Shown here: in pieces, positions 49,001 through 55,312 of the stretch
Layout: each line of letters starts with the position of its first letter
Numbering within the stretch: the first letter of the stretch is position 1
Assembly: GCA_900088475.1 (NCBI GenBank)
Contig: FLMG01004035.1
Coordinates: 11,660 to 75,659 of the forward strand
DNA: 64,000 nucleotides
Direction of reading: 5' to 3'
Source: Hyphochytrium catenoides
Lineage: Eukaryota; Protista; Hyphochytriomycota
Notes under the pieces: model-generated
What the model saw: the letters and a program-made list of their open reading frames with translations, nothing else
What the model was told of the DNA's origin: nothing
Database searches by the model: none
Translations under genes and position numbers: made by a program

Positions 49001-52000
49001 CGGTGATTGGAGCCTTGAGGTTAGACTCATATCTTTACCTGGGAGAACATCTTCAAGCAATGGGAGAAGCTCCCTGGCACCCTGATGTTCCGTCACAAGA
49101 CACGTTGGGGGTAGCGAGGCAACCGTAGCCCTCCAACCGTCGGAGTTCCGCCTACCCAACTCCGGGCTATTGGCCCGGCTGACACCAATATCTTCTCCTT
49201 TCCAGTGTACTACGAGGTAATGGCAGAGCAGGCTTCAGAACGTTGCTAGAGGGTTATGAGCAGCCGCAATCAGTGAAGGCCAGAAGGAATTACCTGGGTA
49301 GGATACAATCCGCCTGTGGGATGGCGCCGACTTTCTAAATGGCGAAAGGAAATATCAGGGGCTTGATACAGAGCGATGGGAAACGAATAAAGTGGTCGAG
49401 TTTGTTTTTAGTAAAAAGGTAGCTGGACGGAATTGCAGCACGACGACTTAGAGTCATAGCACTGACTCAGGAAAGTCACTAAGAAAGAGCTCCGTACAGC
49501 ATAAAGATGGCGGAGATCGAGAAGACCAGGATACCCATTCCAGACGGCAGTTAGCCTTGCTTCTGTTGAGGTCCTCCACCTCGAAGACACCCTCGCGTCC
49601 AAGCAAGTCAAGTAGGAGCTCCGGGCTAGTCGCCCTTATTAGCAGTGGGAGCAGAGCACGATATGGAGAGAACCGTATCGTGTATTCTGCTGCACAGACA
49701 CAGGGAGTTATTGTGCCAGGATATCTTTGAAGAGAGAGGGCATCAATTAGGTTGACAGTACGAGTGCATCTCAAACTCTCATTGAGCTTCTTCTATTGGA
49801 TGTTTGAAAGGCAAGATCTAAGAAGCAAAAACGAGACAACTCTCCGCTGCCATCTGAGAGATCAATAGCGGTCTAGGCACATTGATGACGGACCCTTGAA
49901 GTAGAAGAGATACTTCATACCTTTCCCCAGCAATTTTGACGACCTCTTGGAGGCATCTGCTCTTTCCCATCCCAAGAGATCCCGATAGCAAAACAACATT
50001 TCCTCTGTTCGCCTGGGACAGAGACTCTAGGCGGGTTTCGAGAGCTATGAGCACCTTTTGATGGCCAACCATATGGACTCCCCTTTTGAGAGGCGACGTC
50101 AGGATTGAGCTCCTCTTGCCCAAATGACCCTGAAACCAGACAGAAGTCAGATTACAGGTAGGAGTCTATTGCTGAGACTGGATAACAACCAGAGATGTGA
50201 AGATAAAAGGTGGACCACAAAGGGATTCTTGAGCTGCAAGGGCCATATAGAGCTTGATAAAATGATAAACCAAAAGGTATAAGAAATGAAGAAAGAAAAA
50301 CCAACGCAGATGAAGAGGGGAATGAGTCATCAAGGCGGTACTATGTGGCTGTTCGACATCTGACCGTCTTTCTCTCTTCTATAGGGGCAAAGACAAAGAC
50401 CTCTTCTGCCTTCCCTTTCAACCTATGTGATAGTATGAAAAGCAGAGTGTCGGTAGAGCAAGTGTAAATGAGACACTATAGAAGATGGATGCTCCTTATG
50501 TGAGTGCAGTATTCAACCCGACGTAGAAGATAAGGGGAGATAGGTCGGCGCGTCAAGAAGGCTAAGTGATACTGCCGGCAATTGGTAAAGAGGGACGAGT
50601 GGACTAACAAAAACGAAGGCAGGAGCTGCTAACTGGTTGAGGTCTTGGTCCTGCATAGACTTAACTGACGAATTCAAAACTGCAGTGGGGAAAATAGCTC
50701 CTTAGAGTCAACTGCTCTGGAGCACGCGAGACATAGTGACGAGTAGGACCGTACCTTGCCGCAGGCATACTTTAAACTTAATTTTGGCATGCGATTCTCT
50801 GTAGGTCTCTTTGTCCACGAGAATATGTATTCTCTGGGAACTAGCCACGTTCTGGTCGTTTTCAGCCAGGCTACGGTTGTTCTGTAATCTTCCCAGCTTA
50901 CATGCCTCTCCCATGAGTCTTGCCGCCAGGTTAACGCTATCTCCAATCACTGCGTACTCGCACCTCCGTCTGCTTCCTACTACTCCAGCGTACACTCTCC
51001 CGGTGGCAATTCCTACCTTGCAAGGGACTGAACGCAAGGATAGTTCGTGTACCAAGCGCATTGCACACCTGGGGATTGTGGGTGAGTGAGAAAAGATAGG
51101 CTGCAGGGAATAGCCGAAGCCATGGTCAAGCCTTGGAGGGAACCAGTAAGGCAGTCGATCAAAGAAAGAGCACATGCCAATGTAAGGTCCAAAGTACCCA
51201 TAGATGGAGGGGTCTGCCTTAAGTGACCGGGAATTGGCATAAATAGGCGCGAAAGGACCTTGTAGCCAGGACGGCATCGTTTTCGTGGGCCAATGGGTAA
51301 AGTCCAAACACTGCAATCATTACTGTTCCTTTATCATCCATAAGGAACTGACGCATAGAACCTTCATATAGGTAGAGGACTTCCTGCATGATCTGTAACG
51401 ATGTCTGCACCAGTTGGAGATCAAAGCATGGGAGCAAGAGGACAGGCCGTTAACAGGGAGATAAAGAGATCAGAGGAGCCTATGCTGTGTTGAAAATCGA
51501 GTACTAGCACCGCCGTGACAGAAGCAAGACAAGACTGCCTTTGACTAGTAATACCTGCAAAGTATGGAGTATCTCGTCATCTTTTCTTGAGTAGTCGACA
51601 TCTGAGAGGTTGATAAAGAGAATTGTGGTCCGTCGAAGCTCCCCCACGGTCCTTCTTTCCCACTCCTCTTCTCTAACCCCTTCACGTACCGAGCCAGGAA
51701 GATATCTGGGTACCCAGATAGAGTTGAAGTGGAAACACATTTGCAGTGAACAGAGTAGGGAGCCAAGGTATGGGGAACGGCGTTAAGGTGGAGTCGGGAA
51801 GCAAGGAATGAGAGATGGCCTTTTACCTGAGAAGCACTTGACAGACATCCATGCTGAAGAGACTTGTGCTGTTTCACAAACGAATCCGAATGCAGCAGAT
51901 TAGACGGCAGAGCTGCTCCAGAATATGAAAATCAAGGTCTAGGGGAGTGGCGTAGAACAAGTCGCGGGACCCGAGTTTAAATCGGGAAGGTCGCAAGGCT

Positions 52001-55000
52001 TAATGTTCTCACGGGCACTTGAGGATAACATGAACCGAATCGATGCTTTTTGAAATCATATTGATCGGAAGACATACCTAGTCTGCCTTTGGCTCTCTGC
52101 CCACCTGGCCCATCTCCATTGCGAAGGCAACAGCTGAAGCCGCTCTTTGAGCCCACATACTCGAACCACACCTCCGTATCGTCTAGGCATCTCGGCATGG
52201 CAGCGTGAGGAGATTAGAGCCCAGGTCTACATTCCATAAACAAGAGTCAAAATAACTGACAGTCAAAGCAGCCTTGTCGGTCAGAGTGAAGAGCGTGATC
52301 TGCATGCTCATAGGCCAATGTATATACGCTCCAGATAAGGCAGGTCTAAGTCTAGCTCAAAATTATATGGGCTTTGGGTTAAACAGATCCAAACAAGGAA
52401 ACCAGACCCGAAGCTGGCATGTAATGACCCTCCCAGAGATTGATGGTGGTTACGAGCCATTCGAAGGGTAGAAAGAACCCGAGTCCTCCGACAGGACGGG
52501 AACGTGTCAGGAGAACATTGTATTACCTCTGGACTGACGCAGATCTCTCCCTTTTGTGCTTGAACCTCAGCTTCACCCATCTGCACCAGGGCTCCTCCTG
52601 CCAGCAGGAACTCCCAGCGTGACATCACACCGCCTACGTTCAGGAATAAAACGTCCCCACTTCCTAGCCTGGAATGGAAGAATATACAAGATAGAGAACA
52701 GACTGACGTTGGCACGACATGGTGAGCAGCTCTAAGAAGAAGGCTCAAGCCTTGAGGGGCCCCAGGAAGGGGATACCCCCGCGCGGATCACCGCATTTCG
52801 AAGGATAAACAACGGAAGAGCAGCAAATGTGCGTGTGACGTTACCCGATATGAAGCCTTAGACCCTCCTGATGGTCCAACTCTTTAATGAGGTGTAGAGC
52901 ACAGTCGACAGCCCTTAGTGCGGACGATCGCAGCCCTGTTAGGGGCCAAAGCAAGCCTGTTTTCGAGCTCCCTTCATCGTAATCCTCTTCCATATCAAAA
53001 TAGGTACAAAAGCAGGTAGAACAGCACCAACACGGCTGCTGCTTGGACAAGTTGCAGGTGAGATACTTTAAAGGAAAATGTGGGCGATAGGAACATGTTT
53101 CTCAACGCTCTAATTGAAGAGATGGAAAGTGAGAAATGAACGTAGAGCCCGGGAGCAAGTAAGTACACCTCTTACTTTGGAGCCTTCCAATAAAACTTGT
53201 TGAAAGCAGCAAGATCGGCAGGAGAACTCCTCACAGCGGAAGCATCGTCGAAGGATTTTTGTGCCGGAGCTTCCAAACGTCCCTGCTTGGCATGCGAAAA
53301 GTATTGTTAAGGGAACAATGTACAGACACTTGAGCGCATGAAGTCCGACTTCACATGAGCTGGTATCAAGAACGGTGGAGCGGACGCGAAGTCAGCTGCA
53401 CTATGTTACCTTCCTGAGCGTTTTCTCTGCTACTTCTACTTGAGAAGGACGCGGTGGGCGACTGACCCATGGAAGCGCACCTGCTCAGGTAATCGGAGTG
53501 AACTTAGGTGCACTATGGATGGCGGTGTCGGCATTAGAGATTCTTAGTAGGCTAAGATACCCATGTCAAGTCATACCTAAAGCAAGGGACACCCGTCAGC
53601 GGGGGTGAAGGTGAGGAAAGACCAGAGTCCAGCGGTAATCGTTCCTTGTCTCTGCATACTGGTATCAGAACCTTTCCCGTCGTTCCTTCGTGGTGTACAG
53701 CGGTTGCAATAAAGGTCTCTCCTTCTTCCTTTCTGCGATGGTGATGAGGAAGGAGGCGGCAGCAGAGAGAGAGGAAGGGAGCTTTTCGCTATTCCCAAAG
53801 CGTTCGATATCCTCCTCCGTCAGTACCCTAGGGCTCCCGCTATAACAATCATCGCAGACCTGGTGGAACGATTAGAGCTGTAGAAGCAAGCCTAACATCC
53901 TGGTTCTCAACTGCACCTTCTCGTATCCATAATTATCTCCTATGACGCGTTCCCTTTCCCCCTAATAGCCAGCCTTCTTGAAAGGCCTGCTCCTCCGATG
54001 TTCTCTCTCTGTTGAAGTCTTCTTTGGTTCTCTCCTTCTCACCCGCATACATACACGTGTTCGTTGCACTCTATCTGCCATTCGTCGTGTGCACTTTGCC
54101 TCTAACCTGCACGATAATTCCTAGGTCAGCACTGATCACCCGGTTTTGAGTGCACTGCTTGCATGCGCTGGGTCCACAGACAGCGCAGCCGGAGGAAGAG
54201 TTTTCTACTAGCTCCCTTGACTCGGCTCCGCACAGGCGGCAAATAGTAGAAGGGGAAGTCGGGAGGGCATTGGGTTCCCCATCCGCCACCACAGGGAGCT
54301 TTTCTCTTTTCATAAGAGAGAGCCATGGTATCCTGCGGTTTTCCTCGTCCTTCATATCCTTCTTTTCCGCCGAGCTCTTGACGTTAGACGTAGGAGAGTG
54401 TGGACGATGCTCACTTTTATGACCTACGTAGCCTGATCCGGCTGCACGCCGGCGCTCGTTCTCTGATATATTTGCCGGCCCTTGAAGAAGTTACGGAGAG
54501 CGATAGTTGAGATATCAATACCCAAACTGGTAGCACTTTCTCCTACTTCTCGCCTACCGGAGCGCGCCTCCTCGTCCTCCTCCTCGGTACTATCACTAAG
54601 GAAGCCACGCGGAGAAGTGGGTTCTGCGATTTCCTCTTTCTGAGCTTGTGCCTGTGCTAATGATTCCTTGTTCTTGAACAACACGATGAGTGCATCACCG
54701 GCGAACTTTATCACGTCTCCACCATGCATATAGATGAGATCAATCATTTTCTCGAAGTAACGGTTTAGGATCTGGTAGTGCAAGAGGCTTTAGAGTTCAA
54801 GTTGGAGCAGAGCTGCTTAGGCAAGACGATAGGAACGCAGACTGACTAATGGCGTCTGGGGCATAGTCATTTGGCAAGAAGAGAACGTTGGATATTCAGC
54901 AGGGGTTTTAAATGCTAGGGTCGGAGTAATGAATCAAGCAAAGGAGTACGAGTAAAGCACCTGACGGACTAGTGAGAGACTTCTGAGTCATATAACAGAG

Positions 55001-55312
55001 AGCAACTCAAAAGAGGCAAGGTGAGAGAAGAAAGAGGTTCAGGCTCATCCACTGTTGAACAGTCTCGGCTGTAATTTTCTGCGTGTTTCTAACCGTCGAT
55101 AACTCTTCAACTCCTGCCCCACCAGGCTTCTCCAATGCCAGCCTTTCCGCCAGAGCAGTAAAGCCTGAGATATCCGCCAGCATCACGACGCACTCATAGG
55201 AATCCGCATAGGGTTCCGCCTCGGTCCTCCCAGATGCAATTCTCTCCATCAAGAGCTCCGGCACGAAGGACTCAAGAATCCGCACGTTGGACGATTCCCG
55301 AATGGCCACCAT
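43028..55312 (-). CDS. Soluble-type (ADCY10/sAC/sGC-like) class III nucleotide cyclase: C1+C2 catalytic domains, STAND P-loop NTPase, TPR-like C-terminus; may extend 5' to an ATG at 55722
   Basis: C1: MLADISGFTALAE, GGDVIKFAGDAL, LRLHIG, RWEFLLAG. C2: ELRRTTILFINL, YEGSMRQFLMDDKG..AVFGL, GIATGRVYAGVVGS..RCEYAVIGDSVNLAARLM. Walker A GSLGMGKS, Walker B LLVIEDLQWMD, TEGNPQY, LPDSIQGILASRIDRL, FSFRNQLVREAAY. Confidence 0.93.
53006..54241 (-). other. Two tandem FYVE-type Cys8 zinc fingers encoded inside cyclase domain C1
   Basis: Finger 1: CRLC..CAVCGPSACKQC..IVQ|VCDDCY. Finger 2: PCFR|C..RRCFRCEEFSCRSC..SK|QPCWCCSTCF. The intron phases splitting the fingers are mutually consistent. Confidence 0.8.

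Follow-up and report, generated by a model that had tools for sequence, protein, structure and literature searches.

Soluble adenylyl cyclases are regarded as local signallers, and their cellular positioning is poorly understood. A cyclase gene of Hyphochytrium catenoides raises the question of whether a docking domain can be built into the catalytic domain of such an enzyme. The gene lies on the minus strand of a 64,000 nt stretch of contig FLMG01004035.1 (positions 11,660 to 75,659 of the contig); this whole stretch is referred to as the window, and all coordinates are positions within it. An earlier note on the same DNA had proposed that two tandem zinc fingers of the FYVE type interrupt the first catalytic domain (C1) of a soluble nucleotide cyclase. 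Our analysis makes it probable that two tandem FYVE-like double-zinc fingers, together with disordered linkers, have genuinely been inserted in frame into the loop between the GDAL strand and the following helix of C1, in an enzyme of the soluble adenylyl cyclase (sAC) type (C1, C2, STAND module, repeats). The same reading, which we grade as a whole, includes that the insert was inherited from an ancestor common to at least two marine protist relatives.

Relatives were collected with HMMER. The open reading frame (ORF) of the second catalytic domain (C2) was searched against 1.84 billion representatives, and a further search with the closest match led to 284 cyclases in total. Among these representatives nothing was closer to the C2 ORF than 68% identity over 59 residues. 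Three relatives are central to the following analysis: P0164 (EukProt g2189.t1, 2585 aa), L002 (a Tara Oceans scaffold, the contig of P0003) and P0004 (an ENA metagenome contig). Translation of the minus strand and tblastn with relatives revealed a multi-exon gene of the sAC type that comprises C1, C2 and a predicted region with a P-loop nucleoside triphosphatase (NTPase) and helical repeats. C1 begins at an ATG at position 55312, and its exons align to P0164, P0004 and others, so that C1 and C2 form the chain of two catalytic domains typical for ADCY10-type cyclases. The C2 ORF reached 29.4 bits against Pfam Guanylate_cyc (threshold 21.9 bits). According to the translations and the alignments to relatives, the catalytic residues are kept in C1 (two metal-binding Asp, in ADISGFT and KFAGDAL) and in C2 (Lys, Asn and Arg, in DDKG and VNLAARLM), and the catalytic motifs are predicted to be intact on both sides of the insert. 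The Lys of KFAGD, corresponding to Lys95 of the human bicarbonate site, is present. At the position of Arg176 of this site a Gly appears to stand, as judged by eye.

C1 is encoded in two pieces. The conserved part of exon 2 stops at KFAGDALIVLF, and C1 resumes with SALRAVDCALHLIKEL..GLRLHIG in the exon 53038-52845, which joins in frame to 52668 (LGSGDVLFLNVGG). The sequence flanking the insert is that of a normal class III cyclase C1 domain, as judged from these translations. Between the KFAGDALIVLF strand and the SALRAVDCALHLIKEL helix the gene encodes about 270–335 residues in 6–7 exons, in agreement with the roughly 300 residues and six or seven exons originally proposed. With the junction 54427>54332 the insert has 317 or 334 residues; if this first junction is placed at another in-frame pair, the linker loses as many as about 45 residues.

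To rebuild the chain, exon ends were anchored by sequence motifs. Four GT-AG junctions connect the finger exons: 54107|53859 (phase 0, IIVQ|VCDDCY, donor GTTAGA at 54106), 53577|53480 (phase 2, donor GTATGA), which creates the CFRC of finger 2, 53410|53282 (phase 1, donor GTAACA) and 53176|53038 (phase 0, donor GTAAGA). The earlier note had given these junctions with phases 2, 1 and 0, and all four were reproduced with compatible phases. All four acceptors end in CAG, and donors and acceptors resemble those of both flanking cyclase introns. For the VCDDCY exon there is a single possible acceptor, at 53859 in phase 0. Once spliced, both fingers have the pattern CxxC..CxxC-x4-CxxC-x16-CxxC with eight Cys in four CxxC pairs: finger 1 is CRLC-x14-CAVC-x4-CKQC-x16-CDDC, and finger 2 is CFRC-x36-CFRC-x4-CRSC-x16-CSTC. 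The spacing of 16 residues before the last Cys pair, as in all relatives, arises only through the proposed splices. Since only 54107|53859 and 53176|53038 restore this spacing, these two junctions are independently supported. A tandem acceptor (CAG|CAG at 53038/53035; 53035-53041, minus strand) would leave 16 or 15 residues before the last Cys pair of finger 2, and only its first site (16 residues) agrees with the relatives. A simple codon log-odds score, trained on the long ORFs of the window, was negative for all five proposed introns in every frame and positive for the longer exons in their own frame, among them exon 2.

Two of the junctions in this region are ambiguous (see below), and the finger ORFs might be a nested gene or chance ORFs within one long cyclase intron. 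We regard such an artefact of the gene model as highly improbable. The motif CxxC-x4-CxxC occurs twice in the six frames of the 64 kb, both times in the insert, compared to a mean of 0.075 in 200 shuffles, and the 1750 nt bin 52501-54250 holds 11 CxxC on the minus strand versus a mean of about 2.3 per bin. These counts rule out chance ORFs as the source of the fingers. Moreover, the ORFs lie on the same strand with all phases compatible, the end of finger 2 and the C1 helix are encoded without a break in the exon 53038-52845, and three relatives have fingers at the same position in a single ORF.

Finger 1 was compared to Pfam FYVE (PF01363, gathering threshold 27.8 bits) and to FYVE_2, the rabphilin-type family (PF02318, 27.2 bits). 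For FYVE the score rose from 18.5 bits for the exon alone to 29.6 bits after splicing to VCDDCY (profile positions 5–63 of 67), which is above the threshold. For FYVE_2 it was 18.5 bits for the exon alone and 16.2 bits after splicing, both below the threshold. Of the families that the earlier note had named for a profile scan, FYVE was thus recovered for finger 1 and Guanylate_cyc for C2, but not FYVE_2. A phmmer comparison of the 67 residues of finger 1 to solved FYVE domains matched Vps27 (E 5.9e-4) and RUFY1 (E 0.005), and more weakly Hrs, FGD5 and EEA1. As a proxy for the window finger we used an AlphaFold model, of moderate confidence, of finger 1 of the closest relative L002, with a mean predicted local distance difference test (pLDDT) value of 69 and about 81–83 in the core. 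Its ten best PDB matches were all FYVE domains (template modelling (TM) score 0.53–0.66, normalised by the query), followed by rabphilin/RIM fingers at ranks 11–14. A RING or PHD identity was rejected, as these folds appeared only as low-probability matches ranked under FYVE in the fold search.

A profile built from the relatives' fingers alone gave 23.3 bits for finger 1 and 13.2 bits for finger 2, and it is only by this score and its cysteine spacing that finger 2 is FYVE-like. The two finger ORFs are the two best raw six-frame matches to this profile in the whole 64 kb, with the finger-2 core ORF at the top. Five finger cores (both fingers of the window gene, both fingers of P0164 and the finger of P0004) align without gaps at CxxC-x4-CxxC-x16-CxxC, and the CFRC knuckle of finger 2 parallels the knuckles CMRC, CSQC and CMQC of the relatives. 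We conclude that the predicted insert is FYVE-type, with FYVE identity established for finger 1, and that both predicted fingers are homologous to the fingers of the relatives. The original assignment of two FYVE-type fingers therefore stood for finger 1, by its Pfam score and the alignments to solved FYVE domains, and holds in a weaker form for finger 2.

Is this arrangement a peculiarity of one gene? Both halves of C1 are present in 228 relatives, where a median of 33 residues separates them. This distance exceeds 200 residues in 11 of the 228, two of which, P0004 and P0164, are Cys-rich in this region. The earlier note had suggested a search of stramenopile proteomes for split-C1 cyclases; among the relatives collected here, P0164, L002 and P0004 carry fingers in the split. 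A first regular-expression screen for four-pair fingers had missed P0164 and P0004, whose first loops exceed the allowed length. P0164 has two fingers at the same C1 position. In L002, a single ORF located upstream of P0003 contains finger 1, then a linker and finger 2, and continues through the C1 helix and GLRLHIG to the remainder of C1. The frame from the fingers to C1 is uninterrupted over 535 codons, which places the fingers in C1 without any splicing; the scaffold is eukaryotic, with short GT-AG introns later, in C2. P0004 is an intronless ORF of 2325 aa with one FYVE domain exactly at the insertion point (31.1 bits for residues 380–520 alone; EEA1 E 7e-4), and human sAC was matched on both sides of its insert. 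A model of C1, insert and C2 of P0004 had pLDDT values above 90 for the catalytic domains, with human sAC as best match (TM 0.75, normalised by the target).

P0164, L002 (with P0003) and P0004 share the cyclase clade and the insertion point with the window gene, and P0164 and L002 also share the two fingers. Their catalytic parts are 40–54% identical to the window gene. Whereas a single exon or an intronless ORF encodes their fingers, those of the window gene are spread over 6–7 exons, and P0004 differs in having a single finger that keeps WxxD, compared to two fingers without WxxD in the window gene. Each of the four fingers in P0164 and L002 matched FYVE better than any other Pfam family, at sub-threshold scores (17.7–26.1 bits). 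In full-length scans P0164 reached 22.1, L002 21.5 and P0004 20.0 bits, which would explain why FYVE is missing from the precomputed Pfam list of P0164 and from threshold-based domain annotation of these relatives. Automatic gene calling had split the L002 gene into L002:3-1607 and L002:1751-6106 at short GT-AG introns (RQFIM|GTAAGT..CAG|DDKGTT|GTGAGT), and the N-terminal product runs past the contig end.

A search with the two-finger insert of P0164 found P0164 alone. Two metagenome scans, one with an alignment of L002 and P0164 and one with the last finger exon of the window gene, revealed no further members, and a search with the exon-2 ORF gave no fragment relatives. In the ESM Atlas the L002 ORF retrieved only generic cyclase clusters and bacterial zinc-ribbon cyclases, with scores under 0.9. 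Full-text literature searches on FYVE together with adenylyl, adenylate or guanylate cyclases, stramenopiles, oomycetes or labyrinthulomycetes gave no description of a FYVE domain within a cyclase in this layout. The earlier note, which knew of no described cyclase with such an architecture, agrees with these searches, but P0164, L002 and P0004 show that sequences with it are present in public collections. The predicted layout is real, rare, common to a few marine relatives, and not described in the literature searched.

After the inserts had been trimmed out, a quick maximum-likelihood tree was computed from the catalytic parts. It grouped the window gene with P0164 plus L002 (support 84); the window gene is 54% identical to L002. 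This group sits within a clade of ten with support 100, which also holds P0004 together with the insert-less L003, the insert-less P0162 and four clusters with a DEP domain in the insert. In these four (P0146, P0160, P0161 and P0163) the DEP domain is part of an insert of 530–710 residues at the same C1 loop, and P0146 scored 44.6 bits with Pfam DEP. Since the members of the clade differ in this way, the same C1 loop has held two fingers, one finger, a DEP domain or nothing. The DEP-containing clusters are metagenomic and labelled only "class 3 adenylate cyclase" in their sources, where we saw no description of the layout.

Several points weigh against this reading or narrow it. The tree is a quick search, and the support of 84 for the key node is below the star level of 95. 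In the model of P0004 the insert is of low confidence (pLDDT 25–70), which makes its modelled placement against the catalytic core tentative. The core of finger 2 had no match to any Pfam family, its codon scores and those of the other short finger-2 exon gave no clear signal in either direction, and a Glu follows its fourth Cys where a Gly is conserved. Both fingers lack the motifs for binding of phosphatidylinositol 3-phosphate (PI3P), namely WxxD and R(R/K)HHCR, as the earlier note had stated, and also RVC. In the alignment to Vps27, NRKHHCRSCG corresponds to NSSSGCAVCG and VRVC to VQVC of finger 1, with no W..D before the first Cys, and finger 2 has KILRRCFRCEE and CWCC at these positions. 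Because all PI3P-binding motifs are missing, lipid binding is a conjecture. The splicing itself is predicted from sequence and homology only. Several candidate splice sites had been anticipated for two junctions, and this was borne out: 173 in-frame GT-AG pairs could join exon 2 to the finger-1 exon, and from VCDDCY to the PCFR exon there are five options. In addition, many in-frame routes, for example 54557>52935, could skip the fingers.

For exon 2 the candidate donors are 54557, 54494 and 54427, and the acceptors of the finger-1 exon range from 54480 to 54298; the better-looking pairs are 54427>54332, 54557>54441/54432 and 54494>54432. The options for the second ambiguous junction include 53826>53728/53716 (model A) and a 47 nt intron, 53698>53651 (model B). 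Both models differ at this linker junction only; their open frames, which run from exon 2 through C1 to its end, comprise 423 and 440 residues. No significant match that would discriminate between them was obtained with a profile built on the inter-finger linker of the relatives, and codon scores were conflicting. The candidate 47 nt intron (53652-53698, minus strand) reads GTACAC..CTGAT..TGCAG; nearby introns have 96–320 nt, and the alternative is a 98 nt intron (53729-53826). Neither the ambiguous junctions nor the tandem acceptor offer a choice that alters any cysteine pair.

The skipping routes, many of them with acceptable splice sites, lead to the view that the finger exons are facultative or decaying and that the main transcript skips some or all of them, leaving an ordinary C1 loop. 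The divergence of finger 2 and the lack of an insert in the close relatives L003 and P0162 would fit this view. We nevertheless consider it improbable: 16 of 16 cysteines are kept with exact spacing across four introns, the finger junctions are all canonical and in phase, the codon scores separate the proposed introns from the longer exons, and the orthologues hold both fingers and C1 in one exon. The predicted features of the gene are compiled in the following table.

Table. Predicted features of the sAC-type cyclase gene (positions within the window).
Feature	Position	Strand	Content and basis
Exon 1	55094..55312	-	Start codon, C1 start, first metal-binding Asp (MLADISGFT); ORF and motif-anchored ends
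Exon 2	54428..54771	-	ILNRYF..GGDVIKFAGDALIVLF (second metal-binding Asp), then acidic low-complexity linker opening the insert
Finger-1 exon	54107..54332	-	CRLC (54241), CAVCGPSACKQC (54187), beta hairpin ending IIVQ
VCDDCY exon	53827..53859	-	Fourth Cys pair of finger 1; may extend to 53699 (model B)
Linker exon	53577..53728	-	Ends ..LTGVPCFR (first Cys of finger 2, phase 2); start 53728/53716 (model A) or 53651 (model B)
CFRC-knuckle exon of finger 2	53410..53480	-	Knuckle, then Ser-rich loop
Finger-2 core exon	53176..53282	-	KILRRCFRCEEFSCRSCC..EGSK
Last finger-2/C1 exon	52845..53038	-	QPCWCCSTCF, acidic linker, C1 helix SALRAVDCALHLIKEL, GLRLHIG
Remaining C1 exon	52527..52668	-	LGSGDVLFLNVGG..WEFLLAGGALVQMGEAE; 53-54% identity to P0164 and P0004 (tblastn)
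C2 exons	50768..51707	-	DDKG, GRVYAGVVG, EYAVIGDSVNLAARLM; Pfam Guanylate_cyc and tblastn
STAND-type NTPase P-loop	49935..50072	-	GSLGMGKSR; aligns to the same module in P0164 and P0004 (tblastn)

Exon 1 is 41–44% identical to P0164 and P0004 (tblastn). The P-loop exon alone matched Pfam AAA_16 with E 2.9e-4, under the threshold; in P0004 the AAA_16 match has 36.4 bits. Downstream of the P-loop, long helical-repeat ORFs extend to about 43 kb. In C2 (~50830-50890, minus strand) 19 extra residues (GRLQNNRSLAENDQNVASS) follow ARLMGEACK and have no counterpart in P0164 and P0004. A short intron as their source was ruled out, since there is no in-frame GT-AG solution. Among the relatives, P0004 has an N-terminal GYF-like stretch (P0004:65-98; 24.8 bits, just under the threshold of 25.7), and P0018 and P0077 have a low-complexity insert of about 280 residues after the C1 helix, not before it, that contains no cysteine pairs. 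The bacterial ESM Atlas clusters join Guanylate_cyc to a zinc ribbon or DZR and are a further, distinct example of class III cyclases with zinc fingers.

What could the insert do? We propose that it may act as a docking module that brings a cyclase, which would otherwise be soluble, to a membrane or a partner, so that cyclic nucleotide would be made locally. FYVE and DEP are both membrane-associated docking domains, and the most economical role common to both would therefore be to position a soluble cyclase in this way. The earlier note had suggested a membrane- or GTPase-sensing module that could localise or gate cyclic nucleotide synthesis. The DEP domain at the same loop of sister cyclases supports localisation, as circumstantial evidence; nothing in this analysis supports gating. 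With the PI3P pocket lost, docking would bypass it. A likelier route would be binding of anionic lipid by a basic cluster that immediately precedes the third Cys of finger 2 (KILRRC in the window gene; RPRPRRNC and RPPRPRVNC in its relatives), the one conserved feature that is a candidate for lipid binding. Finger 1 may then serve as a structural or protein-binding unit. The insertion point would lie at the far end of the strand with the metal-binding Asp, next to the helices of the G-alpha groove of membrane cyclases. Since the loop and the active-site Asp would thus be at opposite ends of this strand, a domain placed in the loop need not interfere with catalysis.

In the main competing explanation the fingers are not a membrane anchor but a module for protein binding or autoregulation, which would bind a small GTPase or other partner, or fold back on C1 and thereby gate catalysis. 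Rab and Munc13 are bound in this manner by FYVE-related fingers of the rabphilin and RIM type, and fingers of this type occupied the ranks directly below the FYVE domains in the fold search. Apart from the WxxD kept in P0004, every PI3P motif is lost in all members, which favours this explanation. Finger 1 is acidic/polar where FYVE domains have the membrane-insertion turret, the FYVE_2 profile matched weakly (16–18 bits), and in the model of P0004 the last helix of the finger (H279-288) runs almost straight into the C1 helix (H291-322). On the other hand, the FYVE_2 scores are well under the threshold, true FYVE domains rank above rabphilin and RIM in sequence and fold searches, and membrane docking as the common role is suggested by the DEP domain that sister cyclases carry at this site. 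On balance we consider a protein-binding role rather unlikely, and prefer docking of an inherited FYVE-type insert.

A more far-reaching view, which we put forward as a doubtful one, is that the C1 strand-to-helix loop is a modular socket in which swappable docking domains (two FYVE-like fingers, one FYVE domain or a DEP domain) couple membrane or ligand binding to catalysis. If true, this would be a second, independently evolved control of a class III cyclase at the surface of the groove through which G-protein alpha subunits regulate mammalian membrane cyclases. A small clade of protist enzymes appears to have built docking domains, FYVE-like or, in sister genes, DEP, into the catalytic domain and not at the end of the protein. 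Nature would thus offer a case in which to test if localisation or allosteric control is exerted through the C1 loop, and a class III cyclase loop that tolerates inserts of several hundred residues may be useful for engineering.

Like human sAC (ADCY10; 4CLF, 4USU and others), the window gene encodes C1 and C2 in tandem within a single chain, with a predicted region of P-loop NTPase and helical repeats behind them. The KFAGD motif is identical in ADCY10 and the window gene, and ADCY10 is the best sequence and fold match of P0004 on both sides of the insert. It has about 20 residues (110–129) where P0004 has an insert of ~216 residues and the window gene about 270–335 residues with two fingers. 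The DEP-in-C1 cyclases form a sister group in the same clade of ten and use the same C1 loop, but carry DEP where the window gene has zinc fingers.

With the FYVE domains of Vps27, EEA1, Hrs and RUFY1 the window fingers share the eight Cys in four CxxC pairs with the same spacing, the CxxCG turn and the closing VCxxC(Y/F). They differ from canonical PI3P-binding FYVE domains, in which the three lipid-binding motifs are present. Finger 2 and the fingers of the relatives have a loop of 36–130 residues between the first knuckle and the rest, unlike canonical FYVE domains, which moreover lie between domains and not inside another domain. Rabphilin-3A, RIM2 and CARP2 have the double-zinc fold without lipid-binding motifs, as found here, and were retrieved with the L002 model at ranks 11–14 and 36. 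Their sequence and fold scores were lower than those of true FYVE domains, in line with the sub-threshold FYVE_2 scores. The flanking helices by which rabphilin-type fingers bind Rab were not seen here, and no test was aimed at them. An analogy outside the cyclases is FYVE-Rheb of Euglenozoa, in which a FYVE domain was added to a protist signalling protein and read as a changed mode of membrane attachment (PMC5869587). FYVE-Rheb is not a relative of the window gene: there the FYVE domain is fused N-terminally to a GTPase and regarded by the authors as an N-terminal PI3P-binding module, whereas the fingers described here would sit within the catalytic domain.

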